The translations under genes and the position numbers were made by a program. Below are positions 3,660 through 18,658 of a DNA stretch of 64,000 nucleotides, piece by piece; within the stretch, counting starts at the first letter, position 1, and each line of letters opens with the position of its first letter. The notes below the pieces were generated by a model that saw only the letters and a program-made list of their open reading frames with translations, ran no database searches and was not told the origin of the DNA. The stretch covers positions 62,001 through 126,000 of the IMG/VR virus record IMGVR_UViG_3300025536_000010. One strand, written 5' to 3'.

Positions 3660-4094
3660 ATGCCTTCGAGCTTGGTGAAGTTCAGCAACCGGACACGGGC
3701 ATCGGGGGGTCGCCACCTCCACTGGAACCGGCTAGAGTTCGACGGCCTGCCGTTCCGCGGCGACATGGCCCCGATCATGCCGGAGGAGGAGTACGAGGCC
3801 CGAGCCGTTCGCATCTCCGATTTCCGCAACGGCTTTTTCGATGTCCAGGACGCTCAGGAGAACAAGTGGTACTGCGACGTGATGGAGTGCTGCTTCAACG
3901 GCTGGTTCAAACTGTGGTACGAAGAAAAGTTCTGGGTCGGGCCGGACGGCAAGCGCACCACGAAGCATTACCTGGAGTGGGTCGAATACTATATGGAGGA
4001 CGGCACGCGGACGCCGTTCGTCACCAGTGGCATGATGGAGATGGCGCATGGACAGCAAAACCTCCTCGGACATTATCAGCAGGGTCCGGGCTGA
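3660..4094 (+). CDS. Hypothetical protein
   Basis: 144-aa aromatic-rich globular ORF in the frame with typical codon bias. Confidence 0.7.
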   Translation: MPSSLVKFSNRTRASGGRHLHWNRLEFDGLPFRGDMAPIMPEEEYEARAVRISDFRNGFFDVQDAQENKWYCDVMECCFNGWFKLWYEEKFWVGPDGKRTTKHYLEWVEYYMEDGTRTPFVTSGMMEMAHGQQNLLGHYQQGPG

Positions 4095-4965
4095 GAAGCA
4101 GGCGTTTCTGGGTCTGGGCGAGGCACAGCCGGACACGGCTGGGTTCGCTGACGCGATCCAGGACATGGCCTCGGCGCAGCTCAAGGCCGACGCGGGCCGC
4201 GACGTGCGCAACCTGGCCCTAGCTGCCCTGGGTGTGGGCGTCGCCGGGCGCGGGGCCGTGGGCCTCGTCAACGCGCTCAAAGGCGACAAGCCGAAGAAGA
4301 CGCGCAGCGGCCCTACCATGCTGCCCTTGCCGTACCCGGTCGAGCCGGCGGTCATGCCCGGCAACATCAAGGCCGGCGGCTTCCTCAGCGGGGACGCCGC
4401 TTCCACGAAGTCCGGCATCCCCTGGTACACGCCGGCCATGTTCCTCGGCGGCCTGGGTGGGCTGGCGGCCGGCTGGAAAGGCATGGACGCACTGCTGGAC
4501 GCGCGTCGCAAGAAGGAGCGCGAGAACGAACTGATAACCGCCCGCCAGCAGTTCCACGACGCGCTGCTGTCGCAATACGACAAGCCCCTGGCACTCAAGA
4601 AGGCAGCCGAGGCGACGACGATGGAGAAGGTCGGCGCGCTTCTGGACAGCCTGTTCGACAAGTTCACCGGCACCCTGGAGAAAACCTCCATCGACTGGTC
4701 CAACCTGGGCGGGATGGCCACGGGCGGCTACGGGGCCTACGCCGGCCTCTCGGGCCTGCTTGCCGGCGCCCTGGTCTACGACAAGATCCAGAAGCGTTCG
4801 CAGCGTGCGGTCCTGGAGAAGGCCATGCAGCGCCGACAGCGGCGCGAGTTCATGCAGCGGCCGACCGAGATCTACGCGATCCCGGAGCCGGTGTCAGCCG
4901 TGCCCAAGGCCAACTTCAAGGACGAGATGAAGCTCCTGACGGAGTCTCCCGAAGCGGAGGTGTAA
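4048..4965 (+). CDS. Hypothetical K-x-A motif protein with glycine zippers
   Basis: EKQA, IKAG, KKAA, EKTS; three GxxxG hydrophobic segments. Confidence 0.75.
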   Translation: MDSKTSSDIISRVRAEKQAFLGLGEAQPDTAGFADAIQDMASAQLKADAGRDVRNLALAALGVGVAGRGAVGLVNALKGDKPKKTRSGPTMLPLPYPVEPAVMPGNIKAGGFLSGDAASTKSGIPWYTPAMFLGGLGGLAAGWKGMDALLDARRKKERENELITARQQFHDALLSQYDKPLALKKAAEATTMEKVGALLDSLFDKFTGTLEKTSIDWSNLGGMATGGYGAYAGLSGLLAGALVYDKIQKRSQRAVLEKAMQRRQRREFMQRPTEIYAIPEPVSAVPKANFKDEMKLLTESPEAEV

Positions 4966-4966
4966 G

Positions 4967-7900
4967 GTGGCTGGACTGCTGGCCGATTTCCCCAAGCCGA
5001 AAGCGCCAGCGCTGGACCTGCCCCAGACGAAGGCGCAGTCGATCTTGTCCAGCGGGCCGTTGACGGCCCCGCCTACCCCCGCGCCGCAAATGCGGGAGTT
5101 CGGCGATGCGCGCCTCACGCGCCAATACATCTACGAGGACGCCCTGAACGCCGCCCGCAACATCGAACCCATCGAAGACGAACGCTACCGCCTGCGGCTG
5201 GCCGACGTGGACTGGGCCGACCCGGAACGCTTCACGCGCAAGCAGCGCAAAGCGGCAATCCTGGCCGGCGACACGCTGGCTCGGCGCCTGCGCGGCAGCT
5301 GGGTATTGGAGGACGTTGCCACGGGTAAGGAGATCCAACGGCGCGCCCAGATCGTCGGCCGCATTCCTTACCTGTCCAGCATGGGCACGTTCGTCCACAA
5401 GGGGAACGAATACACCGTCAACCACCAGCAGCGATTGCGGCCCGGCGTCTTCGCCCGCGTCAAAGACAACGGCGAGATCGAGAGCCATGTCAACGTACTG
5501 CCGGGTAAGGGCGTCTCGCACCGCTACTTTCTGGACCCGGAGAAGGAACTGTTCAAGCTGCGGCTCGGACAGGCCGAGATGCCGCTGCTGCCGCTAGTCC
5601 AGGCCCTCGGCGCCACCGACAAGGAAGTCCGCGAGGCGTGGGGCGACCAGCTGTTCGCGGCCAACTACAAGCACCTGGACAGCGGCCAGACTATCAAGAA
5701 GCTGGCCGCGCGCCTGCTGCGCCGCGCCGACCAGGGTTTAGACGAAGGCACGACGCGGCAACGGCTGGCCGATACGATCAACCGTATGGAACTGGACCCG
5801 GAGGTCACCAAGCGCACGCTGGGCCAGCCGTACGCCAACCTAAACAAAGAAGTTATCCTCAACGCCACTAAAAAACTGATCCAGGTCAACCGCCGCGAAG
5901 TTGACCCCGACGACCGCGACAGCCTGGCCTACCAGCAATTCTTCGGCCCCGAAGACCTGTTCGCCGAGCGCCTGCGGCGGGACCACGGTAACCTGCGGAA
6001 ACAGCTGTTCAGGAAGATCGCCCTGGCCGGCAACCTGGACAAGATGCCCAGCGGCGCGCTGACGCCCCAGGTCGAGCAGGTGCTGCTCGGCAGCGGGCTC
6101 GCGCAGGCACTCGAAGAGATCAACCCGGCCGAAGTCTTCGATAAGCAGAGCCGTATCACGCGCATGGGCGAGGGCGGTATCCCAAGCCTAGACGCGATCC
6201 CCGACGAAGCCCGCGCCGTACAGCCGTCGCACATGGGTTTCATGGACCCGCTGCGGACACCGGAGAGCTTCCGCGTCGGCGTCGACCTGCACATGGCGCG
6301 CAGTTCGCGCAAAGGCCGCGACGGCCGCATCTACACGAGCCTCCGCGACCAGCAAGGGAACATGGTTTGGAAGTCCCCGCAGGACGTGGCTGAGGCAAGC
6401 ATCGCTACGCCGGACGTGCTCAAATGGGACACGAAGCGCGTGCCGGTGATGAAGGGAGGCAAGCTGGCCTATGTTCCGAAGAATGAAGTGGATTTTGTCC
6501 TACCTAACTTCGAGGACTCGTTTTCGCCGCTTGGTAACATGGTGCCGCTCAAGAGCATGGTCAAAGGCCAGCGCGTCGCAATGGCCAGTCGCATGCTCAC
6601 CCAGGCCCTCCCCCTCACCGCCGCCGAGGCTCCGCTTGTACAATCCGGCTTGCCTGGCAGTAAGGGCGCCCGGAGCTTCGAGGAAGAATACGGCAAGCAC
6701 ATGGGAGCAGTGGCGGCTGATTCGGACGGACGGGTCGTCGATGTCCGTGACGGAGTTATTAAGCTCAAGTACAACGACGGCCGCACCGACGAGGTCGAAC
6801 TCTACGAGAACCACCCGTTCAACCGGAAGACCTACATCAACCAGACCGCGGTAGTAAAACCAGGCGACGCGATTACGAAAGGACAGCTGCTGGCTCACAG
6901 CAACTACACCGACAAGACCGGGGCGACGGCGCTGGGCACAAACCTGAACGTCGCCTACTGGCCCTACCTGGGTTACAACTTCGAGGACGCGGTGGTGATC
7001 TCGGAGAGCGGGGCCAAGAAGATGTCCTCCGAGCACATGTACCAGCACGACTTGGAGGTCACGGACAAGCACAAGATCGGGAAGCGGCATTACGTCAACC
7101 TCTTCCCCGGTAAGTTCGACAAGAAGGCGTACGAGAACCTGGACGACGACGGCATTGTTCGGCCCGGCACCGTCGTCAACCACGGTGACCCGCTCATCCT
7201 GGCTGCGCGGCAGAAAGAGTTCGCGCAGAACAAGATCCACAAGAAAAAACAGGCAGGGTACGGCGATGAGTCTCTACTGTGGAAGCATCACGATCCTGGG
7301 GTTGTTACCGACGTCGTGTGGGGCAAAAACGGGCCTGTCGTCCTGGTTAAGTCCCAGTCTCAAATGCAAGTCGGCGACAAGCTCTCCGGCCGTTACGGCG
7401 ATAAAGGAGTGGTCGCGGCCATCGTCCCCGACAGCCAGATGCCGCACGGTCGGGACGGTAACCCCTTCGAGCTTCTCCTGAACCCGCTGGGCGTCATCAG
7501 CCGCACCAACCCGGCACAGAAAGTCGAGGCTCAGCTGGGCAAGATCGCGCGCTTGACCGGCAAGCCCGTCAAGGTGCCCGATTTCGAGGACGAGGAAGAC
7601 CTGACGGCCTGGGCACAAATGCAGCTGCGGATGCACGGCCTCAAGGACACCGAAGACATCGTCTGGCCCGAGAAAAACATGAAGGTGCCAGGCATCCACT
7701 CCGGTACGCGCTTCTTCATGAAGCTGCACCACACCGCCGAATCCAAAGGCCAGGGTCGCGGCGGTGGCTCCTATTCGATGGACGACACGCCGGCTAAAGG
7801 TGGCGCACAGGGTTGTTTCCTGGCCGGCACGCACCTGCATACGGCTGAGCACGGTTTTCAGGACATCGCCCGCATCGTCGGCCGGCGCATGCCTGTCAAA

Positions 7901-8113
7901 GTGCTGACTCGGCGGCCGGGCGGCGTACACCAGCAGTGGCTGCCGGTCACGGACTGGTTCCACTACCGGGTCGACGCAAACGCACTGGTGACGCTGCGGC
8001 TTGGTAACGGCCGGGAGATCCACGTCACCAGGAACCACGAGTTCGTCATGGCAGACGGCACGCGGAAACTGGCGGGCGACCTGGTCGCGGGCGACGACCT
8101 GATGGAGGTTTGA
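4967..8113 (+). CDS. rpoB: Phage RNA polymerase beta subunit (N-extein, 949 aa) fused to N-terminal split-intein half
   Basis: RpoB motifs GTFVHKGNEYTVNHQQRLRPGVF, HMGFMDPLRTPES, GYNFEDAVVIS, GDKLSGRYGDKGVV, LNPLGVISRTN, FMKLHH; ends in an intein-like CFLAGT...VTRNH. Confidence 0.93.
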   Translation: MAGLLADFPKPKAPALDLPQTKAQSILSSGPLTAPPTPAPQMREFGDARLTRQYIYEDALNAARNIEPIEDERYRLRLADVDWADPERFTRKQRKAAILAGDTLARRLRGSWVLEDVATGKEIQRRAQIVGRIPYLSSMGTFVHKGNEYTVNHQQRLRPGVFARVKDNGEIESHVNVLPGKGVSHRYFLDPEKELFKLRLGQAEMPLLPLVQALGATDKEVREAWGDQLFAANYKHLDSGQTIKKLAARLLRRADQGLDEGTTRQRLADTINRMELDPEVTKRTLGQPYANLNKEVILNATKKLIQVNRREVDPDDRDSLAYQQFFGPEDLFAERLRRDHGNLRKQLFRKIALAGNLDKMPSGALTPQVEQVLLGSGLAQALEEINPAEVFDKQSRITRMGEGGIPSLDAIPDEARAVQPSHMGFMDPLRTPESFRVGVDLHMARSSRKGRDGRIYTSLRDQQGNMVWKSPQDVAEASIATPDVLKWDTKRVPVMKGGKLAYVPKNEVDFVLPNFEDSFSPLGNMVPLKSMVKGQRVAMASRMLTQALPLTAAEAPLVQSGLPGSKGARSFEEEYGKHMGAVAADSDGRVVDVRDGVIKLKYNDGRTDEVELYENHPFNRKTYINQTAVVKPGDAITKGQLLAHSNYTDKTGATALGTNLNVAYWPYLGYNFEDAVVISESGAKKMSSEHMYQHDLEVTDKHKIGKRHYVNLFPGKFDKKAYENLDDDGIVRPGTVVNHGDPLILAARQKEFAQNKIHKKKQAGYGDESLLWKHHDPGVVTDVVWGKNGPVVLVKSQSQMQVGDKLSGRYGDKGVVAAIVPDSQMPHGRDGNPFELLLNPLGVISRTNPAQKVEAQLGKIARLTGKPVKVPDFEDEEDLTAWAQMQLRMHGLKDTEDIVWPEKNMKVPGIHSGTRFFMKLHHTAESKGQGRGGGSYSMDDTPAKGGAQGCFLAGTHLHTAEHGFQDIARIVGRRMPVKVLTRRPGGVHQQWLPVTDWFHYRVDANALVTLRLGNGREIHVTRNHEFVMADGTRKLAGDLVAGDDLMEV
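7814..8110 (+). other. Split intein N-half (IntN, 99 aa)
   Basis: Block A Cys1 (CFLAGT), block B TxxH (VTRNH), ends LAGDLVAGDDL then stop; no C-terminal Asn. Confidence 0.9.
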
Positions 8114-8116
8114 GTC

Positions 8117-10030
8117 ATGGAAGACCTTGGAGTCTTGGCGGCGAAAGCCGCTACGCTGCGCGTGAAACTGGCAAACGTGGCGGCCTTGGCGGCTTCGCCG
8201 GCCGGCGAGAGCGCACTCGCGCGCCTGGGCGGTTGGCTGTCCGGCAAAGCATTCAAGCCGGTATCGCAGATGGCTCGTCCGCAGTTCGGCACGCTTAACG
8301 CGCTTGGTGAAGAAGCGCAGGCGCTGGCGCGCCAGCAGCGCATGAGCCGGCTGACTCTAGGCTTATCCGACAAGCCGTACTTCCATGTTCAAGATCGTGT
8401 TGGTGGCGGCTTAGCCGGTGCCTGGCTCGGTGCGTACGCAGACAGTAAAGTGAACGGCGAGGTCAACGACCTCTCCAGTGCCGGGCGCCGTGCGGCAGCG
8501 GTGCTCGGCGGCGGTTATCTGGGCGGTAAAGGCGCGAACTCGGCTTTGAACGTCGGCCGCAAGTTTACAGCGAACACGTCGCCGCTCATGGGTTACGACA
8601 CGGCTTTGATTCCGAAAGTGTCGCTCAAGTCTATCTGGAACCACGGCGTCATGGACCGCCCAATGGGCGGCATCGCGCGCGGCGGTAGCGGCAGTGAGGC
8701 TAACCCGCGCTACGAACTGCTGCGGCGCTATCTCGGCATTCACAAGAACGACGCGGCCAAAGACATGTTCATCTCGAACGCGGACAAGTCGCTGTCGTTC
8801 AACCCGGCAGTCGTAAAGCCTGGCTCGAAAACATGGCAGCAGTACATTGACCCAGGGCGGCAAGACAGCAGCCTGGGTGTCCGATTCAGCGAGGGCCTCA
8901 AGAACCCACCCAAGCTCGAAGTACCCAATAGCGCCCCGCCCAAGCTCGAAGTATCCGGCAACGCCCCGGCCAAGAGTCTCATTCTTCCGGGCGCTAACCC
9001 GGAACCGCCGCGCAGCGTTTTGCTGGGCGGTGGCCAGCCGACAGGGCCGGCTAAAAAGCTGATCCTGCCGGGACAGGAACCAAACGCACCTGCACCGGCG
9101 CTGGTCATGCCCGGTCAAGGTCAAGCGCCCAGACCTGCGCCGAAGCCAGCGGCCCCGGAGAAAACGTACAGCCTCAACGAGGGCGACCTGGCTAACCCAC
9201 CTGGGTACAGCGTCGACCAGAAGAACAACCCGTTCAACAATCTGTTCGGCTCGCACGACATGCGCCACGTCCAGGGCTCTGTTGAGCGCTTGCCGGGCGG
9301 CAAGTTCCGCACCTCGCACGAGCTAGGTGACACCTGGAACTTCCGTCTCGACCCGCACGAGACGCCAGAAGCCGCTGCTTACCTCAAAGGCATGGCTGGC
9401 ACGTCGCCTAACCGCTGGGGCGAGTTCCTCAAGCAGAAGGCGGACATCGGACACGCCAGTGCCTACGGCGGCCCGGATAAAACAGTGAGCGACCGGCTCA
9501 AGAACTACGGCATGCGCAGTGTCATCGAAGCGGCAGCACAGAAAGAAGCTCCGGTCATTCGGCAACGTATGCGCTTCACTTACGAGGCACCTACCGAAGC
9601 CAACGCGGCTTTCGCCAAGGCGACTGGCGGAGTAGCGCCGAGCGAGATCGAGTTGTTGTCGTCCAACGTCGCCGGGCCTGCCGTGCTTAGCCCCGAACGT
9701 CAGCAAATGCTGCGGCGGCTGCTTGGCGGCAGTGCAGTCGCGGGCACCGGCGGCCTTTACGCGAGCGGCCAGCTACCGAGCAAAGACACGCCCCAGGCTG
9801 CAACGCCACAGCCGCAGCCGCTAACGCCAAAACAAGAGGCACCTGCGTCGAAGACGTGGCGACCACGGGGACGAGAAGCACTATCGGCTTTCTTCCGCAA
9901 GCCGAAGTCTGAGCTATCTACTCGGCAGAAAATGATCCGCGGTGTCACCGACCGCGCGGCCGGCGGCATCCGCAGCTTCTGGGACCGTATGCAGCAGCGT
10001 TATGGCGGCAGTGGAGGGCTCGGAGCGTGA
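8117..10030 (+). CDS. Hypothetical 637-aa protein between the split-intein halves
   Basis: GGAGG SD; stop overlaps the next start (GTGA); N-terminal AKAA/VKLA, Gly zippers, Pro-rich repeats; no LAGLIDADG, HNH or GIY-YIG motif seen. Confidence 0.8.
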   Translation: MEDLGVLAAKAATLRVKLANVAALAASPAGESALARLGGWLSGKAFKPVSQMARPQFGTLNALGEEAQALARQQRMSRLTLGLSDKPYFHVQDRVGGGLAGAWLGAYADSKVNGEVNDLSSAGRRAAAVLGGGYLGGKGANSALNVGRKFTANTSPLMGYDTALIPKVSLKSIWNHGVMDRPMGGIARGGSGSEANPRYELLRRYLGIHKNDAAKDMFISNADKSLSFNPAVVKPGSKTWQQYIDPGRQDSSLGVRFSEGLKNPPKLEVPNSAPPKLEVSGNAPAKSLILPGANPEPPRSVLLGGGQPTGPAKKLILPGQEPNAPAPALVMPGQGQAPRPAPKPAAPEKTYSLNEGDLANPPGYSVDQKNNPFNNLFGSHDMRHVQGSVERLPGGKFRTSHELGDTWNFRLDPHETPEAAAYLKGMAGTSPNRWGEFLKQKADIGHASAYGGPDKTVSDRLKNYGMRSVIEAAAQKEAPVIRQRMRFTYEAPTEANAAFAKATGGVAPSEIELLSSNVAGPAVLSPERQQMLRRLLGGSAVAGTGGLYASGQLPSKDTPQAATPQPQPLTPKQEAPASKTWRPRGREALSAFFRKPKSELSTRQKMIRGVTDRAAGGIRSFWDRMQQRYGGSGGLGA

Positions 10031-10149
10031 AAATAACTTCGGTAGAACCGTTCGCCGGCACTGCGGATCTGGAGGGGAAGGTGGACGTCTACGACATTAC
10101 CGTCGCGGACCTCCACCTTTACGGCGTCTACGGAGTGCTGGTGTCCAAC
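10027..10149 (+). other. Split intein C-half (IntC, 41 aa)
   Basis: MKITS...VYDITV..LH.Y...GVLVSN followed by +1 Ser (10150); same architecture as cyanobacterial DnaE IntC (MIKI...VYDIGV..DHNF....ASN). Confidence 0.9.
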
Positions 10150-11787
10150 AGCAAGCGCGTGGCCATGCTGGACACCAACGCCCTGCTGTCGCACGGGGCC
10201 ACGGAAACGCTGCGTGACGTCCGCCTGATTCGCGGCCAGGGCCGAGCCAGTGAGAACTACTGGCTCCAGTTCATGATGGGTTACACGCCGGTCGACCCCA
10301 AGGTGCCGCAGACGCACGAGAAGTTCGTCAACCAGCTGAAAGCCTCTGGCATCAACGTGGTCCGCGACGGCTACCAGATGAACGTCATGGCCCTGACCAA
10401 CCGGGACGTGGACACCCTGGCGTCCGACCGCATCATCAAGAGCGGGGACACCGTGCGCTTCGACAAGGAACTCAAACCGATCCCGGGTGGCCTGTTCGAT
10501 CCCACGCTCACCGGCGGACACAACGGTAAGCGCTGGGCGGCTATCGAACTGCCCGAACCGATGCCCAACCCGGTCATGGAGGAGCCGATCCGGCGCATGC
10601 TGAACCTGACCCAGAAACAGTTCAGCGCCGTCCTGGCGGGCGAGCACGAACTGCCTAGCTTCGGCAGCGGCCCCAAAGCGATCACCCAGGCCCTGGAGAA
10701 CATCAACCTGGAACGCGAGTTGGCCAAAGCCAAGGCCGAATACACCCACGGACGCGGTACAGCCCGCGACGCTGCGCACCGGCGCTGGCAGTATCTCGAC
10801 GGCGCCCAGAAGCGCGGTCTGCATCCCAAAGATTGGATACTGAACCGCGTGCCAGTGCTGCCGCCGGCCTTCCGCCCGGTCAGCGTCATGGGGGACTCCG
10901 GCGTACCCCTGGTGTCGGACCCCAACTACCTCTACAAGGAGTTGCTCGACGCCAACAAGAATTTCACGGACATGGTCAAGCAGGTGGGGGACAAGAACGT
11001 CGGCAACGAGCGGCTGGCGGTCTACAACTCGTTCAAGGCGGTTACCGGCCTGGGCGAGCCTGTTCACCCCAAGCTGATCGAGAAAAACGTGAAAGGCATT
11101 CTCAAATCCGTTTTTGGAACCTCGCCGAAGTTCGGCACGGTGCAGCGGAAACTGCTGTCCTCGACCGTCGACAACGTGGGCCGCTCGGTCATTACGCCGA
11201 ACCCTGACTACGATATGGACACCATCGGCGTGCCCGAGAACCAGGCGTTCGACGTCTACTCGAAGTTCATCGTCCGCCGCCTGCGCCGCCGGGGCCTACC
11301 GATCCGCGAGGCTCTCAAGCACGTCCGCGACAAATCGGGCCTGGCCCGGGACGTTCTCCAGGAAGAGATGGACAACCGGCCGGTCTATGTCAACCGGGCT
11401 CCGGTGCTGCACAAATTCGGTATCATGGCCTTCCGCCCGCGGTTGATTAAGGGGGACGTCCTCCAGGTCAGCCCGTTGATCGTCAAAGGCTTCAACGCTG
11501 ACTTTGACGGGGACGCCATGCAGTTTCACGTCCCGTCGTCCGATGAAGCGGTCAAGGAAGCCTACGAGCGGATGCTGCCCAGTCGCTCGCTGCTTAGCCC
11601 GGCCGATTTCAAAAGCCCGGTCCACGCTCCTGGCCAGGAGTACCTGGGCGGGCTCTACTACGCGACGCGCCAGCGTGAGGAAGACAAGCAGCGGCGGCCC
11701 CGCGTGTTCCGTTCCGTAGCCGACGCCAAGAAGGCGCACCAGCGCGGCGAGATCACAGCGGACACGCCGATTCAGATCATGGAGTAA
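10027..11787 (+). CDS. rpoC: C-terminal split-intein half + RNAP beta C-terminus + catalytic N-half of beta'
   Basis: After the IntC: SKRVAMLDTNALLSHGA...QLKASGINV (beta end), then GGLFDP, VPVLPPAFRP, NRAPVLH, FNADFDGDAM (11494-11514), GLYYAT. Confidence 0.93.
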   Translation: MKITSVEPFAGTADLEGKVDVYDITVADLHLYGVYGVLVSNSKRVAMLDTNALLSHGATETLRDVRLIRGQGRASENYWLQFMMGYTPVDPKVPQTHEKFVNQLKASGINVVRDGYQMNVMALTNRDVDTLASDRIIKSGDTVRFDKELKPIPGGLFDPTLTGGHNGKRWAAIELPEPMPNPVMEEPIRRMLNLTQKQFSAVLAGEHELPSFGSGPKAITQALENINLERELAKAKAEYTHGRGTARDAAHRRWQYLDGAQKRGLHPKDWILNRVPVLPPAFRPVSVMGDSGVPLVSDPNYLYKELLDANKNFTDMVKQVGDKNVGNERLAVYNSFKAVTGLGEPVHPKLIEKNVKGILKSVFGTSPKFGTVQRKLLSSTVDNVGRSVITPNPDYDMDTIGVPENQAFDVYSKFIVRRLRRRGLPIREALKHVRDKSGLARDVLQEEMDNRPVYVNRAPVLHKFGIMAFRPRLIKGDVLQVSPLIVKGFNADFDGDAMQFHVPSSDEAVKEAYERMLPSRSLLSPADFKSPVHAPGQEYLGGLYYATRQREEDKQRRPRVFRSVADAKKAHQRGEITADTPIQIME

Positions 11788-11866: not shown

Positions 11867-12604
11867 ATGAGCACCCCTTCGCACGGCGATCACCTGGTCA
11901 ATCTCGAAGTCATCAGGATGGCACGTCAACAGCTTGGCGGCTTCCAGAAACAAGCCTTCATCCCAGCTAGCGACCCCGGCATGGGAGCCGGCGGTGGCGG
12001 CGGTGGTGGCGGGGGCGGCGCTCCTCCAATGGACCCCGCGATGATGGGCGGCGGCGGGGGCGGCGCTCCTCCGCCCGATCCTGCCGCTGGCGGCGGTGGC
12101 GGTGGCGGCGGTGGTGGGCTCGATCCCATCATGCAAATGATGACGCAGATGCAGCAGCAGATCCAGCAGCTGACCCAGGGCGGCGGCGCGGGCGGCGGCG
12201 CGGGCGGCGCGCTGAAACCCAAAATCGACGTCAACGTCGAGATGATGCAGATCAAGAACATGCTCGCCAAGATCTGCGACCACCTCGGCATTCAGATCCC
12301 GGCCCAGGACATGGTCGCCACGCCTGAGAAGCTCATGGCGATGTCCCAGGGGCAGTCGGCGGCTTCGCCTCCTGGCACGGGGGCCGGCGGCGCAGGGGCT
12401 GGCGGTGCGGGTGCCGGGGCCATCCCGCCGATGGACCCGATGCAGGGCATGCAGCCCGCCGGCTCGCCTGGCGGCGAGAAGATGGGGGCGCACCGTCCCT
12501 ACAGAGCCAACGGGCAAGCCTACGACGGAACTGCTCTGGCGTCGGGCCTGGGCGAAACGCACAATCGGGCCGCGGCAATCATGCGGCTGCGTCAGGCGGC
12601 ATAA
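11867..12604 (+). CDS. Gly/Met/Pro-rich low-complexity protein (K-x-A motif)
   Basis: QKQAF near N-terminus; poly-Gly runs with MDP/APP motifs. Confidence 0.75.
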   Translation: MSTPSHGDHLVNLEVIRMARQQLGGFQKQAFIPASDPGMGAGGGGGGGGGGAPPMDPAMMGGGGGGAPPPDPAAGGGGGGGGGGLDPIMQMMTQMQQQIQQLTQGGGAGGGAGGALKPKIDVNVEMMQIKNMLAKICDHLGIQIPAQDMVATPEKLMAMSQGQSAASPPGTGAGGAGAGGAGAGAIPPMDPMQGMQPAGSPGGEKMGAHRPYRANGQAYDGTALASGLGETHNRAAAIMRLRQAA

Positions 12605-14216: not shown

Positions 14217-14627
14217 GTGTTCGATACCATCCGCTCTTGGTGGCGAGGCGTCCCCAAACACGAAGTCAAAGAGGTCGAGTGGGGGCGACGGATCGCCAAG
14301 GCGCTCACGACCTACGGCCTGGCCACCCGCGACGAGGTCCGCATCTTCGACGGCACGCGCATCGACCTGCTTACGCCACACCATGCCGTCGAGATCGACT
14401 GGGCGCCGAAGTGGGCTGAGGCCATCGGACAGTCGCTCTACTACGGCGTCCGGTCCAAAAAGCAGGCCGTTGTCCTCCTGCTGCTGTGCGACTCCCGCGA
14501 CGAGGCGTATATCGTCCGCTGCCGCGCGGTCTGCACTACGAATACGCCCAAGATTCCGATTTGGCTGCTCAACACCAAGAGCCGTGTTTTGTACCTCGCG
14601 GACGGACAGACGATCACGGTGGAGTAA
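14217..14627 (+). CDS. PD-(D/E)xK-like nuclease
   Basis: E...DGTRIDLLT...AVEID...KWAEAIGQSLYY, a restriction-endonuclease-fold pattern. Confidence 0.6.
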   Translation: MFDTIRSWWRGVPKHEVKEVEWGRRIAKALTTYGLATRDEVRIFDGTRIDLLTPHHAVEIDWAPKWAEAIGQSLYYGVRSKKQAVVLLLLCDSRDEAYIVRCRAVCTTNTPKIPIWLLNTKSRVLYLADGQTITVE

Positions 14628-17600
14628 TGCTCAAAACCACGATGGGGCAGCTGCTTGTCAATGACTCGCTGCCCGAAGACCTGCGCGATTACGGGCGCAT
14701 CCTCGACAAAAAGGGGATGGCGACCTTGCTGCGCACCGTGGCCGAGAAATACCCGGACCAGTACCGCGACGTCTCGAAGAAGCTGGCCGACATCGGCCGC
14801 AACGTCGCCAGCGAGTTTGGTGGCAACAGTTTCGGGCTGGCGCACATGGCCAAGTCCGGCCTGGGGCAGCAGTACCAGAAGAACTTGCAGGCGAAGCTCA
14901 AGCAGATCCTTGACGATGACAACCTGGACGACGCTAAGCGGCAGGAGTTGATCGTCAAAGCGGCGGGCATGGACCGCGAGAAGCAGATGAAGTCGATCCT
15001 GGAAGAGGCCATCAAAAACAAGAACCCGCTGGCCTCCCAGGTGATCTCCGGTTCGCGCGGCAACGAGATGAACCTGGCCTCGCTGCTGGACTCCGACCGG
15101 CTGTACTCCGACCACCGGGATCAGCCGCTGGCCATCCCTATCGTCCACAGCTACAGCCAGGGCCTGCGGCCCATCGAATACTGGGCTGGCACCTACGGCG
15201 CCCGCAAGGGCGTCATGGCGACCAAGTTTGCCACCCAGGACGCCGGCTTTTTGAGCAAGCAGTTAAACCAGGTCGCCCACCGTCTGATGGTGGTGGACGA
15301 GGACGACCCGCGCTACGAAGGCGACCCGACACCGCGCGGCTTGCCGGTAGACACAGACGACCCCGACAACGAAGGGGCGCTGCTGGGCATGGACGTTGGC
15401 CCGTACAAGCGGAACACCGCGCTGACTCCCAAAATTCTCAAGGACTTGAAAAGGAGGGGACATGCTCGCCTTCTTGTCCGAAGCCCGGTGGTGGGCGGCA
15501 GTCCTGATGGTGGTATTTACGCACGGGATGTTGGTGTGCGTGAACGTGGCACTCTTCCTGGTCGCGGTGAGCAGGTTGGACTCACCGCTGCCCAGGCGCT
15601 GTCGGAGCCGCTGTCGCAGGGGCAGCTGTCGGCTAAGCATTCGGGCGGCGTCGCGGGGCAGGAGAAAGCGGTCGGCGGCTTCCAGTACATCAACCAGCTG
15701 ATTCAGGTGCCCAAGGTGTTCAAAGGCGGGGCGGCGCACTCAAACGAGGACGGCAGCGTCGAACGGATCGAGGAAGGTCCGGCCGGTGGCCAGTTCGTCT
15801 GGATCAACGGCAAGCGGCACTACGTCGGCGAGGGTTTTGAGTTGAAGGTGAAACCTGGCGACCAGGTCGAGGCTGGTGACCTGATCTCGGAAGGTCTGCC
15901 CAACCTGAACGTCGTTGTGGACCATAAGGGACGTGGCGAGGGCGCACGCTATTTCGTCAACTCGTTCGTGGACGCGATGCGCGGGGCCGGGCTCAAGGTC
16001 AACCGGCGCAACGTGGAAGTGCTGGCTCGGGGGCTTATCAACCATGTCCGACTCACCGACGAGTTCCAGGGCAACCTGCCCGACGACGTTGTCCCCTACA
16101 GCACCCTTGAGCACCTCTACGAACCACGCGAGGGTCACCAGACTCTACGAACTGAGCGCGCTTTGGGACAATACCTTGAGCGCCCAGTTCTACACTACAG
16201 CATCGGCACGAAGGTCCGCCCTTCGGTCCTTAAAGAGCTTCAACAGTTTGGTATTAAGGAAGTTGCTGTTCACGCAGAGCCGCCTCCGTTCAAGTCCGAG
16301 ATGATCCGTGGTATGTACTCCCTCCAGCACGACCCGGATTGGATGACCCGCATGTACGGCTCCGGCCAGAAGTCGAGCCTGCTGGAGGCGGTTCACCGTG
16401 GCCGCAGTTCCAACGAACTCGGCACCAGTTTCGTGCCCGGTCTGGCTCGCGCCGAAGAGTTCGGGCGCGTGGGCCAGGTACGCCAGCCGCTACCCGGCAC
16501 GAAGCCGCCGCTCATCGAGCCCGTCACGGAGGACGAGGAGATGCCCAAGAAGAAGCCAACGACGCCGCCGACTTCGCCGATCGCGCTGAACCTCCAGCCG
16601 CCCAAGACCCCCGCACCCAAGAGCATGTTCGGCGGCATGGGGTCCATTTTCAAGCTCTCCTGTGACGCCCTAGAACAGCGGCGGGAGGCCGAGATCCTGC
16701 TGGAGAAAGCTGCTAAGCGGATCGAACAGGTTCGCCAGGCCACAGCCAAGACCAAGCAGACGCAGCAGGTGAAAGCCAGCGCACCTTTGCAGCCTGTTCG
16801 ACGCGCGCAGCAGATCAAGACGGCCGAAACGAACATCGGCAGCAGCACCGTCACGGCTGGTGGCACGACGATCAAGCCGAGCAGTCAGGGCAGCGCAGCA
16901 CCGAAACCGCCCACACCGGCAGCACCGCCAGGCGGGGACGCCTGGAGCGGTCCGCGCGGACCCGCCAACCCGACTTTCGGCGTCGGCCGCAATCCGCACG
17001 CGCTGGGCCAGGGTGGCTACAACCCGGGCATGCCGTCCGGCATCGTCAACGACCCGGAAGCGTTCTCCCGCTTCGTTGACAGCAGCCAACGATTCGGCGG
17101 GTTGACCGGCGGGGCTGTTGCTTTCGGCTCTGGCCTCGACCAGAACGCCGTGGCCACGCTGACCAACCAGAGTCCCTACGTCAAAGGGCACTACGGCTAC
17201 AGCGAGTTCGACCGGCCCACGCCGCCAGGTTACCACCCCGGCATCGGGCGCCCCGGCATGCGCGGCGGCCAACCTGGCAGGTACGGAGGCCACCCCGGTA
17301 TGCAGGACGCTGACGGCATGGACTTCGACGGTGGCTACCCCGGTTTTGACCCCTGGCAGGATCAAGGCGGGCAGCAGCAGACTCAACAGCAGGCGCCACC
17401 GCAGCCCGGTTTCGGCGCGGGCGACATGCTCCAGATGGCTCCCGGCATAACGTCTATGGGCTCCACTGGCGCGCAGCTGGGCGGGCTAGCCACACGCGGG
17501 CTGGGAGCCGCAGCGAACGCCACAGGGGCCACGCGCGTCGGCGGCGCGCTGGGACGCACTGGCGGGGCGTTGGGCCGGGCCGGCGGCTTGGTCGGCAAAG

Positions 17601-18658
17601 CCGCTACGCCGCTGGCTGTAGCCGTGGACACCGGCCAGATGATCGGACATTCGATCAACGACATCAGGAACGGACAGTTTTTCGGCGGCAACGGCGAAGT
17701 AGCCCAGGGTACGCGCCGCACGATGGACGAAATGAACAACGCCACGGACCTCTCGCGCTGGACGGACCCGAACGTCAGCAAGTTCGACCAGCTGATGGAC
17801 ACGACGCACCTCATCAACCCGGTGAGCTATGCACGGTCAGCGGGTGGCGTCATCGGCGACGTGGCCAACACAGCCATCTACGACATGCCGGCCATCCTGG
17901 GCGGCGATTTCAAAGACATGACCAGGCTAGAGTCGTCGTCGAACATCGGCAAGCACTTCGAGTCCCAGCAGAAGATCCAGCAGATGCTCTCCGACGACCA
18001 GCACAAAAAGACCCTGGCCGGCAAACAGGACGGTATCAACCCGTTCCAGTTCACGCCGCATTTCGACCCGAACAAGGACGCACTGACCAACACCTACAAC
18101 AGCCTGACGCGCTCGAAGAACCCGCTTGCCAACGTCATCGGCACCGCCCAGGATCTGCACACGTCCGTCTCGACCATGAAAGGCCAGACCGAGGGCCAGG
18201 CTCGCGGTTTCGAGCAGATCATGTCCGACCGCCGAGCCGCGAACGAGCAGCGGGCGACGCAGCTGCGCGACCTCAAGGGTAAAGGTTTCGCCCTGTCGCC
18301 GGAGGAACAGGCCATCGTCGCCAAGGCCGACGCCGACCGCAACAAGACGGAGGCCCAGCTGGTCCTGGAGGCATCCGGGTTCAAGCCAGGCGATACGAAT
18401 ACCGCGCTGTACATGACGATGGGGCACAAGTCGATCAACCCATTCGATGGCGAGCAGCGCGCCAGCGCCCTCAACCCTGTCTCCGGTCGCCGCTTGGCCG
18501 AGGAAGCGCAGACGGCCATCGACCACGGCGACACCGGCCAGCGTGTCGCCGGGCACGCCGTCAAGGACTTCACGAGCCCGGTGGCTAGCTGGGAACAGAT
18601 CCGCAGCGGTGACTTCCGCGTGCCCGGGTGGAACAGCGTTAAGTCGCTGTGGGACTAA
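14627..18658 (+). CDS. rpoC: RNAP beta' C-terminal half fused to a long low-complexity extension
   Basis: Starts MLKTTMGQLL; SGSRGN; bridge helix GARKGVMATKFATQDAGFLSKQL; trigger loop AAQALSEPLSQGQLSAKHSGG; RRNVEVLARG; RNAP homology ends near 16470. Confidence 0.9.
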   Translation: MLKTTMGQLLVNDSLPEDLRDYGRILDKKGMATLLRTVAEKYPDQYRDVSKKLADIGRNVASEFGGNSFGLAHMAKSGLGQQYQKNLQAKLKQILDDDNLDDAKRQELIVKAAGMDREKQMKSILEEAIKNKNPLASQVISGSRGNEMNLASLLDSDRLYSDHRDQPLAIPIVHSYSQGLRPIEYWAGTYGARKGVMATKFATQDAGFLSKQLNQVAHRLMVVDEDDPRYEGDPTPRGLPVDTDDPDNEGALLGMDVGPYKRNTALTPKILKDLKRRGHARLLVRSPVVGGSPDGGIYARDVGVRERGTLPGRGEQVGLTAAQALSEPLSQGQLSAKHSGGVAGQEKAVGGFQYINQLIQVPKVFKGGAAHSNEDGSVERIEEGPAGGQFVWINGKRHYVGEGFELKVKPGDQVEAGDLISEGLPNLNVVVDHKGRGEGARYFVNSFVDAMRGAGLKVNRRNVEVLARGLINHVRLTDEFQGNLPDDVVPYSTLEHLYEPREGHQTLRTERALGQYLERPVLHYSIGTKVRPSVLKELQQFGIKEVAVHAEPPPFKSEMIRGMYSLQHDPDWMTRMYGSGQKSSLLEAVHRGRSSNELGTSFVPGLARAEEFGRVGQVRQPLPGTKPPLIEPVTEDEEMPKKKPTTPPTSPIALNLQPPKTPAPKSMFGGMGSIFKLSCDALEQRREAEILLEKAAKRIEQVRQATAKTKQTQQVKASAPLQPVRRAQQIKTAETNIGSSTVTAGGTTIKPSSQGSAAPKPPTPAAPPGGDAWSGPRGPANPTFGVGRNPHALGQGGYNPGMPSGIVNDPEAFSRFVDSSQRFGGLTGGAVAFGSGLDQNAVATLTNQSPYVKGHYGYSEFDRPTPPGYHPGIGRPGMRGGQPGRYGGHPGMQDADGMDFDGGYPGFDPWQDQGGQQQTQQQAPPQPGFGAGDMLQMAPGITSMGSTGAQLGGLATRGLGAAANATGATRVGGALGRTGGALGRAGGLVGKAATPLAVAVDTGQMIGHSINDIRNGQFFGGNGEVAQGTRRTMDEMNNATDLSRWTDPNVSKFDQLMDTTHLINPVSYARSAGGVIGDVANTAIYDMPAILGGDFKDMTRLESSSNIGKHFESQQKIQQMLSDDQHKKTLAGKQDGINPFQFTPHFDPNKDALTNTYNSLTRSKNPLANVIGTAQDLHTSVSTMKGQTEGQARGFEQIMSDRRAANEQRATQLRDLKGKGFALSPEEQAIVAKADADRNKTEAQLVLEASGFKPGDTNTALYMTMGHKSINPFDGEQRASALNPVSGRRLAEEAQTAIDHGDTGQRVAGHAVKDFTSPVASWEQIRSGDFRVPGWNSVKSLWD

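Follow-up and report, generated by a model that had tools for sequence, protein, structure and literature searches.

A gene without a detected nuclease fold lies between the halves of a split intein in the RNA polymerase β gene of a jumbo phage

The window analysed here is a 64,000-bp stretch of DNA, bases 62,001–126,000 of IMG/VR record IMGVR_UViG_3300025536_000010, a single metagenomic contig of 234,886 bp. Its source is a jumbo phage with a GC content of ~64% and a multisubunit RNA polymerase. In this genome, the gene for the polymerase β subunit is interrupted by a split intein, and a gene encoding a 637-residue protein lies between the two intein halves (Table 1). This protein is a full-length member of a real but unnamed family built from two modules and found on uncultivated, mostly jumbo-phage-like viral contigs. 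No nuclease fold, nor any other known fold, was detected in it despite confident predicted models.

A split intein in the polymerase gene

The locus consists of three closely packed open reading frames (ORFs). The upstream ORF (4967–8113, 1,048 residues) encodes the N-terminal part of β and terminates in the N-terminal half of the intein (IntN). Its TGA stop codon (8111–8113) is followed by three nucleotides (GTC) and then by the ATG of the 637-residue ORF at 8117, the end of which overlaps the GTG start of the downstream ORF (10027–11787). The latter, 586 residues in length, comprises the C-terminal half of the intein (IntC), the C-terminal part of β and the N-terminal part of β′ (β′N). A pattern scan between 4967 and 11787, in which no RNA folding was done, gave no terminator-like site on the + strand, and the two weak promoter-like matches in this interval are no more than shuffled sequences give (shuffled mean 1.2). 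An internal promoter or terminator uncoupling the three ORFs was therefore rejected, the + strand scan giving none beyond chance.

The boundaries of the intein are fixed by relatives in which the β gene is uninterrupted. These read AKGGESG on the N-terminal side of the junction and SKRISMLDVNALL on its C-terminal side (SKRISML in L007), which places IntN at 7814–8110 (99 residues) and IntC at 10027–10149 (41 residues). The intein blocks can be read from the sequence (CFLAGTHL, TRNHE, VYDITVADLHLY and VLVSN followed by Ser), and the terminal Asn and the +1 Ser nucleophile are both present; the Pfam Intein_splicing match is weak (0.0098). This is a 140-residue mini-intein, split at the usual endonuclease position. 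The 637-residue gene sits between block B (TRNHE) and block F, that is, at the usual endonuclease site of inteins, as a sequence-only reading of this DNA had proposed. The expected spliced product of 949 + 545 = 1,494 residues compares with single-ORF homologues of 1,492 residues (L100) and 1,525 residues (gp206 of Salmonella phage Arash, the same β–β′N fusion as a single protein). IntN is 38–58% identical to the IntN of L003, L005, L006 and L083.

The two intein halves are predicted to associate into one HINT fold. The modelled IntN–IntC complex has an interaction prediction score from aligned errors (ipSAE) of 0.89, compared with 0.00 for the best control, with a partner predicted local distance difference test (pLDDT) score of 85–86 and contacts at least 95% alike over three runs. 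In calibration, 51 of 78 solved pairs and 2 of 108 mismatched pairs attained this ipSAE mark; as solved structures of split inteins exist, the score may partly reflect memory of these.

The β gene of many relatives carries other in-frame insertions of ~0.9–1.2 kb, at about six positions (around residues 410–449, 630, 807, 847 and 926 in window numbering; L003/L004, L008/L009/L070, L018, L020, L032–L034, L055–L057, L072 and L080). In L099 (13323–20239), a β–β′ ORF of more than 3,000 residues has matches to Intein_splicing and LAGLIDADG_3. The polymerase gene of this phage group is an intein hot spot, and no site in it other than that studied here was seen in split form. The C-terminal part of β′ (β′C) of the window's phage is encoded in its own ORF of 1,390 residues (14486–18658; phrog_25354 positions 702–1100, 2e-30), and the polymerase is therefore encoded in three pieces before splicing.

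Table 1. Features of the interrupted polymerase gene and of the gene between the intein halves (window coordinates).
Feature	Coordinates	Strand	Basis or detail
N-extein, RNA polymerase β N-terminal 949 residues	4967..7813	+	Pfam RNA_pol_Rpb2_6 4e-53, Rpb2_3; boundary from uninterrupted relatives
IntN, 99 residues and TGA stop	7814..8113	+	CFLAGTHL (block A) at start, TRNHE (block B)
637-residue gene between intein halves, unnamed phage family	8117..10030	+	ORF, homologues, AlphaFold2 (AF2) model
N-terminal Ala/Leu/Lys helix, residues 1–26	8117..8194	+	Alignment, model
Conserved module 1, residues 20–245, helical; Gly-rich helical hairpin, residues 88–155; ELLRRYLGIH motif	8174..8851	+	
Pro-rich disordered linker, residues 246–356; PPKLEV twice, [LV]x[LVM]PG three times	8852..9184	+	pLDDT <50; alignment
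30-bp tandem repeat, 2.3 copies, 82% matches (the PPKLEV duplication)	8905..8974	+	
Conserved module 2, residues 357–490, α/β; GSHDMR, GDTWNF..DPHE; D405 and R467 invariant	9185..9586	+	
C-terminal tail, residues 491–637	9587..10027	+	Gly-rich residues 535–550; terminal helix residues 597–630, end FWDRMQQRYGG
GTGA, stop of 637-residue gene overlapping IntC ORF start	10027..10030	+	GGAGGG ~10 nt upstream
IntC, 41 residues, end VLVSN then +1 Ser	10027..10149	+	Sequence, uninterrupted relatives
C-extein, β C-terminal part fused to β′ N-terminal part (NADFDGD)	10150..11787	+	Pfam RNA_pol_Rpb1_2 2e-26

The intervening protein and its family

An exhaustive HMMER scan of 1.84 billion cluster representatives recovered 34 representatives of the family at E ≤1e-3, 19 of them at ≤1e-30. 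Other similarity searches contributed little: a word-indexed profile search found two proteins only, tblastn of the window protein against 50,697 phage records gave no match, and scans with the window protein returned nothing from IMG/VR and only its own contig from JGI metagenomes. The family alignment itself proved too divergent to yield a usable scan pattern. The sources that were looked up are all metagenomic, and these members are named at most 'hypothetical protein'. Two modules, corresponding to residues ~20–245 and ~357–490 of the window protein, are common to the family, with D405, R467, H209, D216, N229, R198, E200, R204 and W407 invariant or nearly so. The AF2 model of the window protein has a mean pLDDT of 73.7, with a core above 90 and disorder in the linker and in residues 538–592; that of the compact 386-residue homologue P0002 has a mean pLDDT of 87 and a predicted template modelling (pTM) score of 0.86. 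P0002 resembles the core more closely than any other homologue does (51% and 47% identity) and has no C-terminal tail. In the family tree, the members located in the intein gap group with P0002, P0007 and P0018 (92/91), members fused into giant proteins form a separate cluster, and both ligase fusions belong to a third one, well supported, that also contains five free-standing members.

The features that the sequence-only reading had listed are all in the sequence: the ORF with its GTGA overlap, the glycine-rich stretches (GGGLAGAWLGA, VLGGGYLGGKG and GSAVAGTGGLYASG), the PPKLEV duplication, the LILPG repeats and a low GC content at third codon positions (GC3). Pfam Gly-zipper_YMGG is matched by three family members (best E 2e-4), not by the window protein. 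The 'K-x-A motifs' noted earlier correspond to an Ala/Leu/Lys-rich N-terminal helix, residues 2–26 in the model. This helix is confined to gap-located homologues and to short stub ORFs in the intein gaps of L005 and L006, in which the C-terminal end, a helix ending in FWDRMQQRYGG, is also retained. A hidden Markov model of the N-terminal motif matched no other protein of the genome, and a shared capsid-targeting N-terminus was rejected on that ground. Classical transmembrane helices were also rejected, as a hydropathy scan gave no segment at transmembrane level (maximum Kyte–Doolittle value 1.26). The comparison with glycine-zipper membrane proteins (Pfam Gly-zipper_YMGG and Rick_17kDa_Anti; Tim17/23-like hairpin) covered both profile matches and the hydrophobicity of a possible hairpin.

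The linker of the window protein, 110 residues long with Pro-rich repeats, contrasts with the 10–20 residues found between the modules in most members. LILPG occurs in it twice and LVMPG once (at residues 288, 315 and 329). The pattern [LV]x[LVM]PG is repeated three to four times in the linkers of the window protein, of P0003 (L083) and of the L095 homologue; these three gap-located homologues are 37–50% identical, and the motif occurs genome-wide at 0.21 per 1000 residues. It may be a binding or processing motif.

A recognizable nuclease domain or fold (GIY-YIG, Vsr-like, HNH, LAGLIDADG or EDxHD) was found by neither sequence nor structure searches, Foldseek included, which bears out the earlier statement that the gene is not a recognizable homing endonuclease. 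The window protein has no match in Pfam or PHROGs. At E ≤10, all 33 members together matched only Gly-zipper models in Pfam, for three members, and PHROGs, NCBIfam and PADLOC gave nothing significant, the sole match at E ≤0.1 being one member against PADLOC REase_II (E 0.06, 10 bits). A PDB sequence search gave chance-level matches only (best E 0.12), and a Protein Atlas feature search nothing above chance level. Foldseek and VIA structure searches (PDB, AFDB, BFVD and ESM Atlas; six structure libraries) were not significant for either model, with a best E of 0.025 in BFVD.

Several candidate folds were considered and dropped. RdgC was the best Foldseek match in the PDB (E 0.01, template modelling (TM) score 0.11/0.20), and both it and PprA were set aside (E 0.01–1, TM ≤0.28). 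The top two matches among AFDB clusters are unnamed proteins with E values of 4.5e-4 and 3e-3, and were dropped because their TM scores are only 0.20–0.25. The best ESM Atlas match (DUF3289, TM 0.35/0.45) pointed to the lipid II-degrading fold of colicin M and DUF3289, which was rejected as neither a superposition on the catalytic domain nor a profile match was obtained. A poly(ADP-ribose) polymerase (PARP) catalytic domain (Foldseek E 1.2–2.3) was gone on second look. Finally, the Arash structural protein gp213, encoded between polymerase genes, was rejected as a distant family member (hhalign probability 2.8%).

The GC3 of the gene is 0.719, compared with 0.822 and 0.845 for the two flanking genes. 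It ranks 16th lowest among the 178 genes of at least 150 residues (mean 0.795, s.d. 0.059) and lowest among the 51 genes of at least 400 residues (mean 0.814, s.d. 0.039). This weak bias could be taken as a sign of import. However, the same dip is seen in three of four homologues checked, in genomes of differing GC content (L083, 0.745 versus 0.81/0.86; L095, 0.58 versus 0.69; L084, 0.66 versus 0.75). Because it recurs in this way, the dip is intrinsic to the gene and not a sign of recent import, and recent horizontal import was rejected as its explanation.

Intein gaps and gene neighbourhoods in relatives

An IMG/VR scan with the IntC–β ORF yielded 80 related loci. The β gene is uninterrupted at the site in 76 of these; the four closest relatives (L003/L004, L005 and L006) carry the same intein, split in all. 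The content of the gap is 31 nt with no gene in L003/L004, a 95-residue stub ORF in L005, a 134-residue stub ORF in L006 and a full homologue in L083 (P0003, 37% identity, with ATGA overlaps on both sides). In L095, a homologue is followed directly by IntC–β. In L084, the homologue (P0005) has a dual-specificity-phosphatase-like ORF before it and an IntC-like start after it, the contig ending before a downstream gene is identifiable. The comparison of this position among relatives that the sequence-only reading had called for thus gives a full gene, a stub or nothing, and the gene is not invariably present with average codon usage.

The L005 and L006 stubs have colinear matches to residues 1–21 and ~551–631 of the window protein (62% identity over the 21 N-terminal residues for L006), and their stop codons overlap the IntC start (GTGA or ATGA). 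Across L005, L006, L083, L084 and L095, the junction with IntC is either a 4-nt overlap or a gap of 1–2 nt. The family is absent from the whole records L003, L005, L006, L007 and L018 (82–100% complete), and no further copy was found in the window's genome. Since relatives with the same split intein hold a stub or nothing and whole records lack the family, the gene is dispensable.

A maximum-likelihood tree of the β C-terminal part and β′ N-terminal part unites every split-intein genome in a single, well-supported nine-row clade. Within it, the window has L003, whose gap holds no gene, as its sister (99/86), and L083 has L005, whose gap holds a stub, so that genomes with the full gene occupy three separate branches. 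The arrangement, present in at least two or three other phages, looks ancestral to this small clade. The simplest history, and the best fit, is a single old insertion and then three or more independent reductions, the direction, loss and not gain, being inferred from the sequences; two of the reductions would be in-frame deletions keeping the ORF ends and the IntC overlap. Insertion of the gene into the intein, as first proposed, would then be an old event shared among phages; a one-off landing in this genome is not supported, given L083, L095, L084 and the β tree.

Elsewhere, the family lies repeatedly beside polymerase genes. P0002 (L001) starts 1 nt after the β′N gene and lies upstream of a homologue of window ORF 11867–12604; P0012 (L100) starts 2 nt after an uninterrupted β–β′N gene of 1,492 residues; P0035 starts 2 nt after the β′C gene; and P0016 (L099), located 3 kb upstream of the giant intein-bearing β–β′ ORF, overlaps the stop codon of a LigD-like gene. 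Fusions are also seen: to a LigD-like protein in P0008 and P0019, to a helicase in P0024, and in P0004, P0010, P0011 and P0017 as a module internal to homologues of a 1,598-residue protein of the window's genome. At least seven of ~13 resolved contexts are polymerase-proximal, at four distinct positions, which is far above expectation for a random gene in a genome of ~250 genes. Because the family adjoins RNA polymerase genes elsewhere, the location inside the polymerase gene is not a randomly chosen landing pad, and this part of the sequence-only reading is not supported. The nearest cultured relative is Arash, the β homologue of which (gp206) is the most often detected protein in its virion proteome (PMC10585845).

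Other observations concern the surroundings of these genes. The 1,598-residue protein just mentioned (G000:C1:11343–16139, outside the window; L096) is a Gly/Met/Gln/Pro-rich low-complexity protein with no family hit and without the module. The genes flanking the polymerase block in the window (4048–4965 and 11867–12604) have no family hits and keep their synteny among relatives; they contain Gly runs, Met/Pro repeats and an EKQAF/QKQAF-type motif near the N terminus, which the KQAA stretch before the core in many members of the 637-residue protein's family resembles. A tubulin/FtsZ-like gene (G000:C1:3326–4603, outside the window; L096; Pfam Tubulin 8e-11, Tubulin_2 4e-9), as in PhuZ-encoding jumbo phages, has a 56%-identical homologue in L085. 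The phosphatase-like ORF of L084 (2–232; DSPc 1e-5, HCxxGxxR motif) immediately precedes the family member, and the intein gap of L084 may hold two genes, or its IntN may lie elsewhere. The P0012 contig carries a tyrosine integrase and a sigma-70-like gene (L100:253–1368 and 17460–18407), and the L003 record is classed as a provirus by IMG/VR; at least one relative may be temperate or integrated.

A fractured gene and the nature of its occupant

We favour a reading, to which we give about an even chance, in which the polymerase locus is a fractured gene and the gene in its gap is an accessory module, dispensable and linked to polymerase genes. The β–β′N gene, one ORF of ~1,490–1,525 residues in most relatives, is interrupted here, and the three packed ORFs (βN–IntN, the 637-residue gene and IntC–βC–β′N) would be read from one mRNA. 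IntN and IntC would pair, trans-splice and rebuild the 1,494-residue subunit of ~165 kDa, and the 637-residue protein would be released separately in an amount that, judging from the coupling, is probably tied to that of the polymerase halves. The gene would have entered the intein gap once, in the ancestor of the small clade, and would now be in the course of being lost. Sister genomes keep an in-frame stub of the first ~20 and last ~80 codons, preserving the start context and the stop/start overlap that feeds the IntC ORF, and one lineage would have lost the gene wholly. The family usually resides beside, or fused to, phage nucleic-acid enzymes. The role of the protein is probably, at low confidence, to act as an accessory to the polymerase and other enzymes or to deliver them, these enzymes perhaps being carried in the virion. 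This reading is favoured because of the breadth of the fusions, the tight coupling to the polymerase and the lack of a nuclease signal despite confident models; a selfish nuclease appears less likely.

Several points weigh against it. Co-transcription, translational coupling and trans-splicing are inferred from sequence, and an accessory or delivery role is drawn solely from the genes that adjoin the family or are fused to it. The same distribution would be expected of a homing gene: sporadic, abutting essential genes at four positions, decaying and lost. No contiguous form of this intein was found, all known copies being split, so that either the split or the insertion may have come first, and the gene may have broken the intein or replaced an earlier endonuclease. 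The matches between stubs and full gene are weak (pairwise E 4e-5 to 7e-3), a 5-row subclade of the β tree is only moderately supported (97/67), and L001 (sample SRR24319179), L084 (SRR21686409) and L095 (ERZ18672347) are short contigs with partial context. No family member lies within 10 kb of β in any of the 80 IMG/VR relatives, and the polymerase therefore works without the family. Finally, the virion data were obtained from Arash, a relative with 30% identity.

The strongest rival is that the gene is a cryptic mobile homing endonuclease, of a fold not recognized, that targets conserved phage genes (RNA polymerase β, β′ and ligase); we regard it as unlikely. Invasion of a contiguous mini-intein would then have made the split, and the stubs and the empty gap would be later stages of a homing cycle. 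Occupation of the canonical endonuclease site, the split state of each known copy of the intein and a 3′ end overlapping or adjoining the start of IntC, a feature reported for fractured genes (PMC2677866), are all consistent with this view. So are the sporadic distribution with decay and loss among close relatives, the position directly downstream of conserved essential genes at four different places, the invariant or nearly invariant polar residues (D405, R467, H209, D216, N229, E200 and R198) and weak but recurring matches to RdgC-like (DNA-binding) folds in three libraries. However, no method detected a nuclease family or fold in confident models, and the conserved core of ~380 residues is bigger than a typical free-standing endonuclease. 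The module also turns up within, or at the C terminus of, ligase, helicase and giant low-complexity proteins, which looks more like the behaviour of a functional domain, and the gene is coupled on both sides, whereas the endonucleases of fractured genes usually come with a regulatory hairpin and a promoter of their own (PMC2677866). That the 637-residue protein founds a new class of mobile genes, with an unseen fold, homing at RNA polymerase and ligase genes and itself the splitter of the intein, seems to us improbable.

The sequence-only reading had proposed that an unrelated virion-cargo gene fell by chance into the endonuclease site in this one genome and broke the intein, which tolerated it as a landing pad. 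The gene is indeed dispensable and not a recognizable endonuclease, and its GC3 is the lowest among large genes; the polymerase of Arash, the nearest cultured relative, is plentiful in its virions, and Gly-rich helices with Pro-rich linkers would suit an internal or ejected protein. Nevertheless, the arrangement recurs in three or more other genomes and is ancestral on the β tree, the GC3 dip recurs in homologues and the family is linked to the polymerase elsewhere, so that the site is not random. The protein shares no N-terminal targeting motif with other proteins of the genome and has no segment of transmembrane hydrophobicity, and the weak match to the Arash structural protein gp213 failed. 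Compared with an accessory module and with cryptic homing, a chance landing is the least supported, and we consider it quite improbable.

Very improbable, too, is that the small two-helix ORF of L005 and L006 was ancestral in the gap and acquired a P0002-type core in frame in some lineages: the N-terminal helix and the C-terminal FW.R helix do occur only in gap-located members and stubs, and P0002, the closest core homologue, is free-standing after β′N without the C-terminal tail, but core insertion at the same point on three branches (window, L083 and L095) or recombination between lineages would be needed, a related N-terminal stretch of the KQAA type is found in P0002 and other members outside the gap, and deletion is simpler, with complete loss seen in L003/L004.

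The favoured reading, a fractured gene with an accessory occupant, can be compared with known systems. The fractured-gene arrangement itself is already known; the occupant is what differs. In published examples (Dassa et al. 2009, PMC2677866), the intervening ORF overlaps the IntC start, and relatives without an intervening gene exist; those seen here resemble the locus gp41-7 of that study. A jumbo-phage case is the PolB gene of Pseudomonas phage MIJ3, split with an HNH endonuclease in the gap (PMC6892783). As in these genes, an essential nucleic-acid enzyme gene is broken in place here by a mini-intein split at the endonuclease site, with co-oriented halves and one ORF between them, the 3′ end of which overlaps or abuts the IntC start. 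Unlike them, the occupant has 637 residues and no GIY-YIG, Vsr-like, HNH or LAGLIDADG domain or nuclease fold, is coupled upstream as well (3 nt), showing neither a promoter-like nor a terminator-like signal in the pattern scan, and belongs to a family also found outside inteins, beside or fused to polymerase, ligase and helicase genes.

The cyanobacterial DnaE split inteins (Ssp and Npu) have an IntN of ~100 residues and an IntC of ~36–41 residues with a Ser-Asn C terminus. The intein described here is similar in the sizes of its halves, in ending with Ser-Asn rather than His-Asn and in that trans-splicing would rebuild a polymerase subunit, DnaE in cyanobacteria versus RNA polymerase β here. 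The DnaE halves lie far apart with no common intervening ORF, whereas those of the window are 1.9 kb apart in what would be one operon. The free-standing seg and mob homing endonuclease genes of T4-like phages, which move by intronless homing, are likewise sporadic genes wedged between essential genes, often read through from upstream, and gained and lost; unlike them, the gene studied here has no recognizable nuclease or DNA-binding module, has a larger core and has a module that is also a domain of other proteins. Multi-domain, polyvalent phage proteins, of the kind that Iyer et al. in 2017 reportedly described as virion-delivered, share with this family its combinatorial fusions (LigD-like phosphoesterase–ligase, helicase and giant low-complexity proteins), although no known polyvalent domain was matched (one BFVD match, E 0.57).

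The usual view of how split inteins originate is that a homing endonuclease gene turns free-standing inside an intein. Here, a gene without a detectable nuclease holds the endonuclease slot and has been inherited there. Related genomes provide a decay series, from full gene through in-frame stub to an empty gap of 31 nt, which suggests that the feature kept in the course of decay is the translational coupling to the downstream half. In-frame stubs that keep just the two ends of a gene have, to our knowledge, not been described before. The intein pair (99 + 41 residues, Ser-Asn C terminus, +1 Ser) could serve as a new orthogonal split intein. The family itself is new, with confident models and no structural relative, and in a large group of uncultivated jumbo phages it is tied repeatedly to their multisubunit RNA polymerase. 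It is a candidate polymerase accessory or delivery factor, or else a new nuclease class; were cryptic homing to prove true, it would be a family of homing endonucleases beyond recognition by current sequence and structure libraries.

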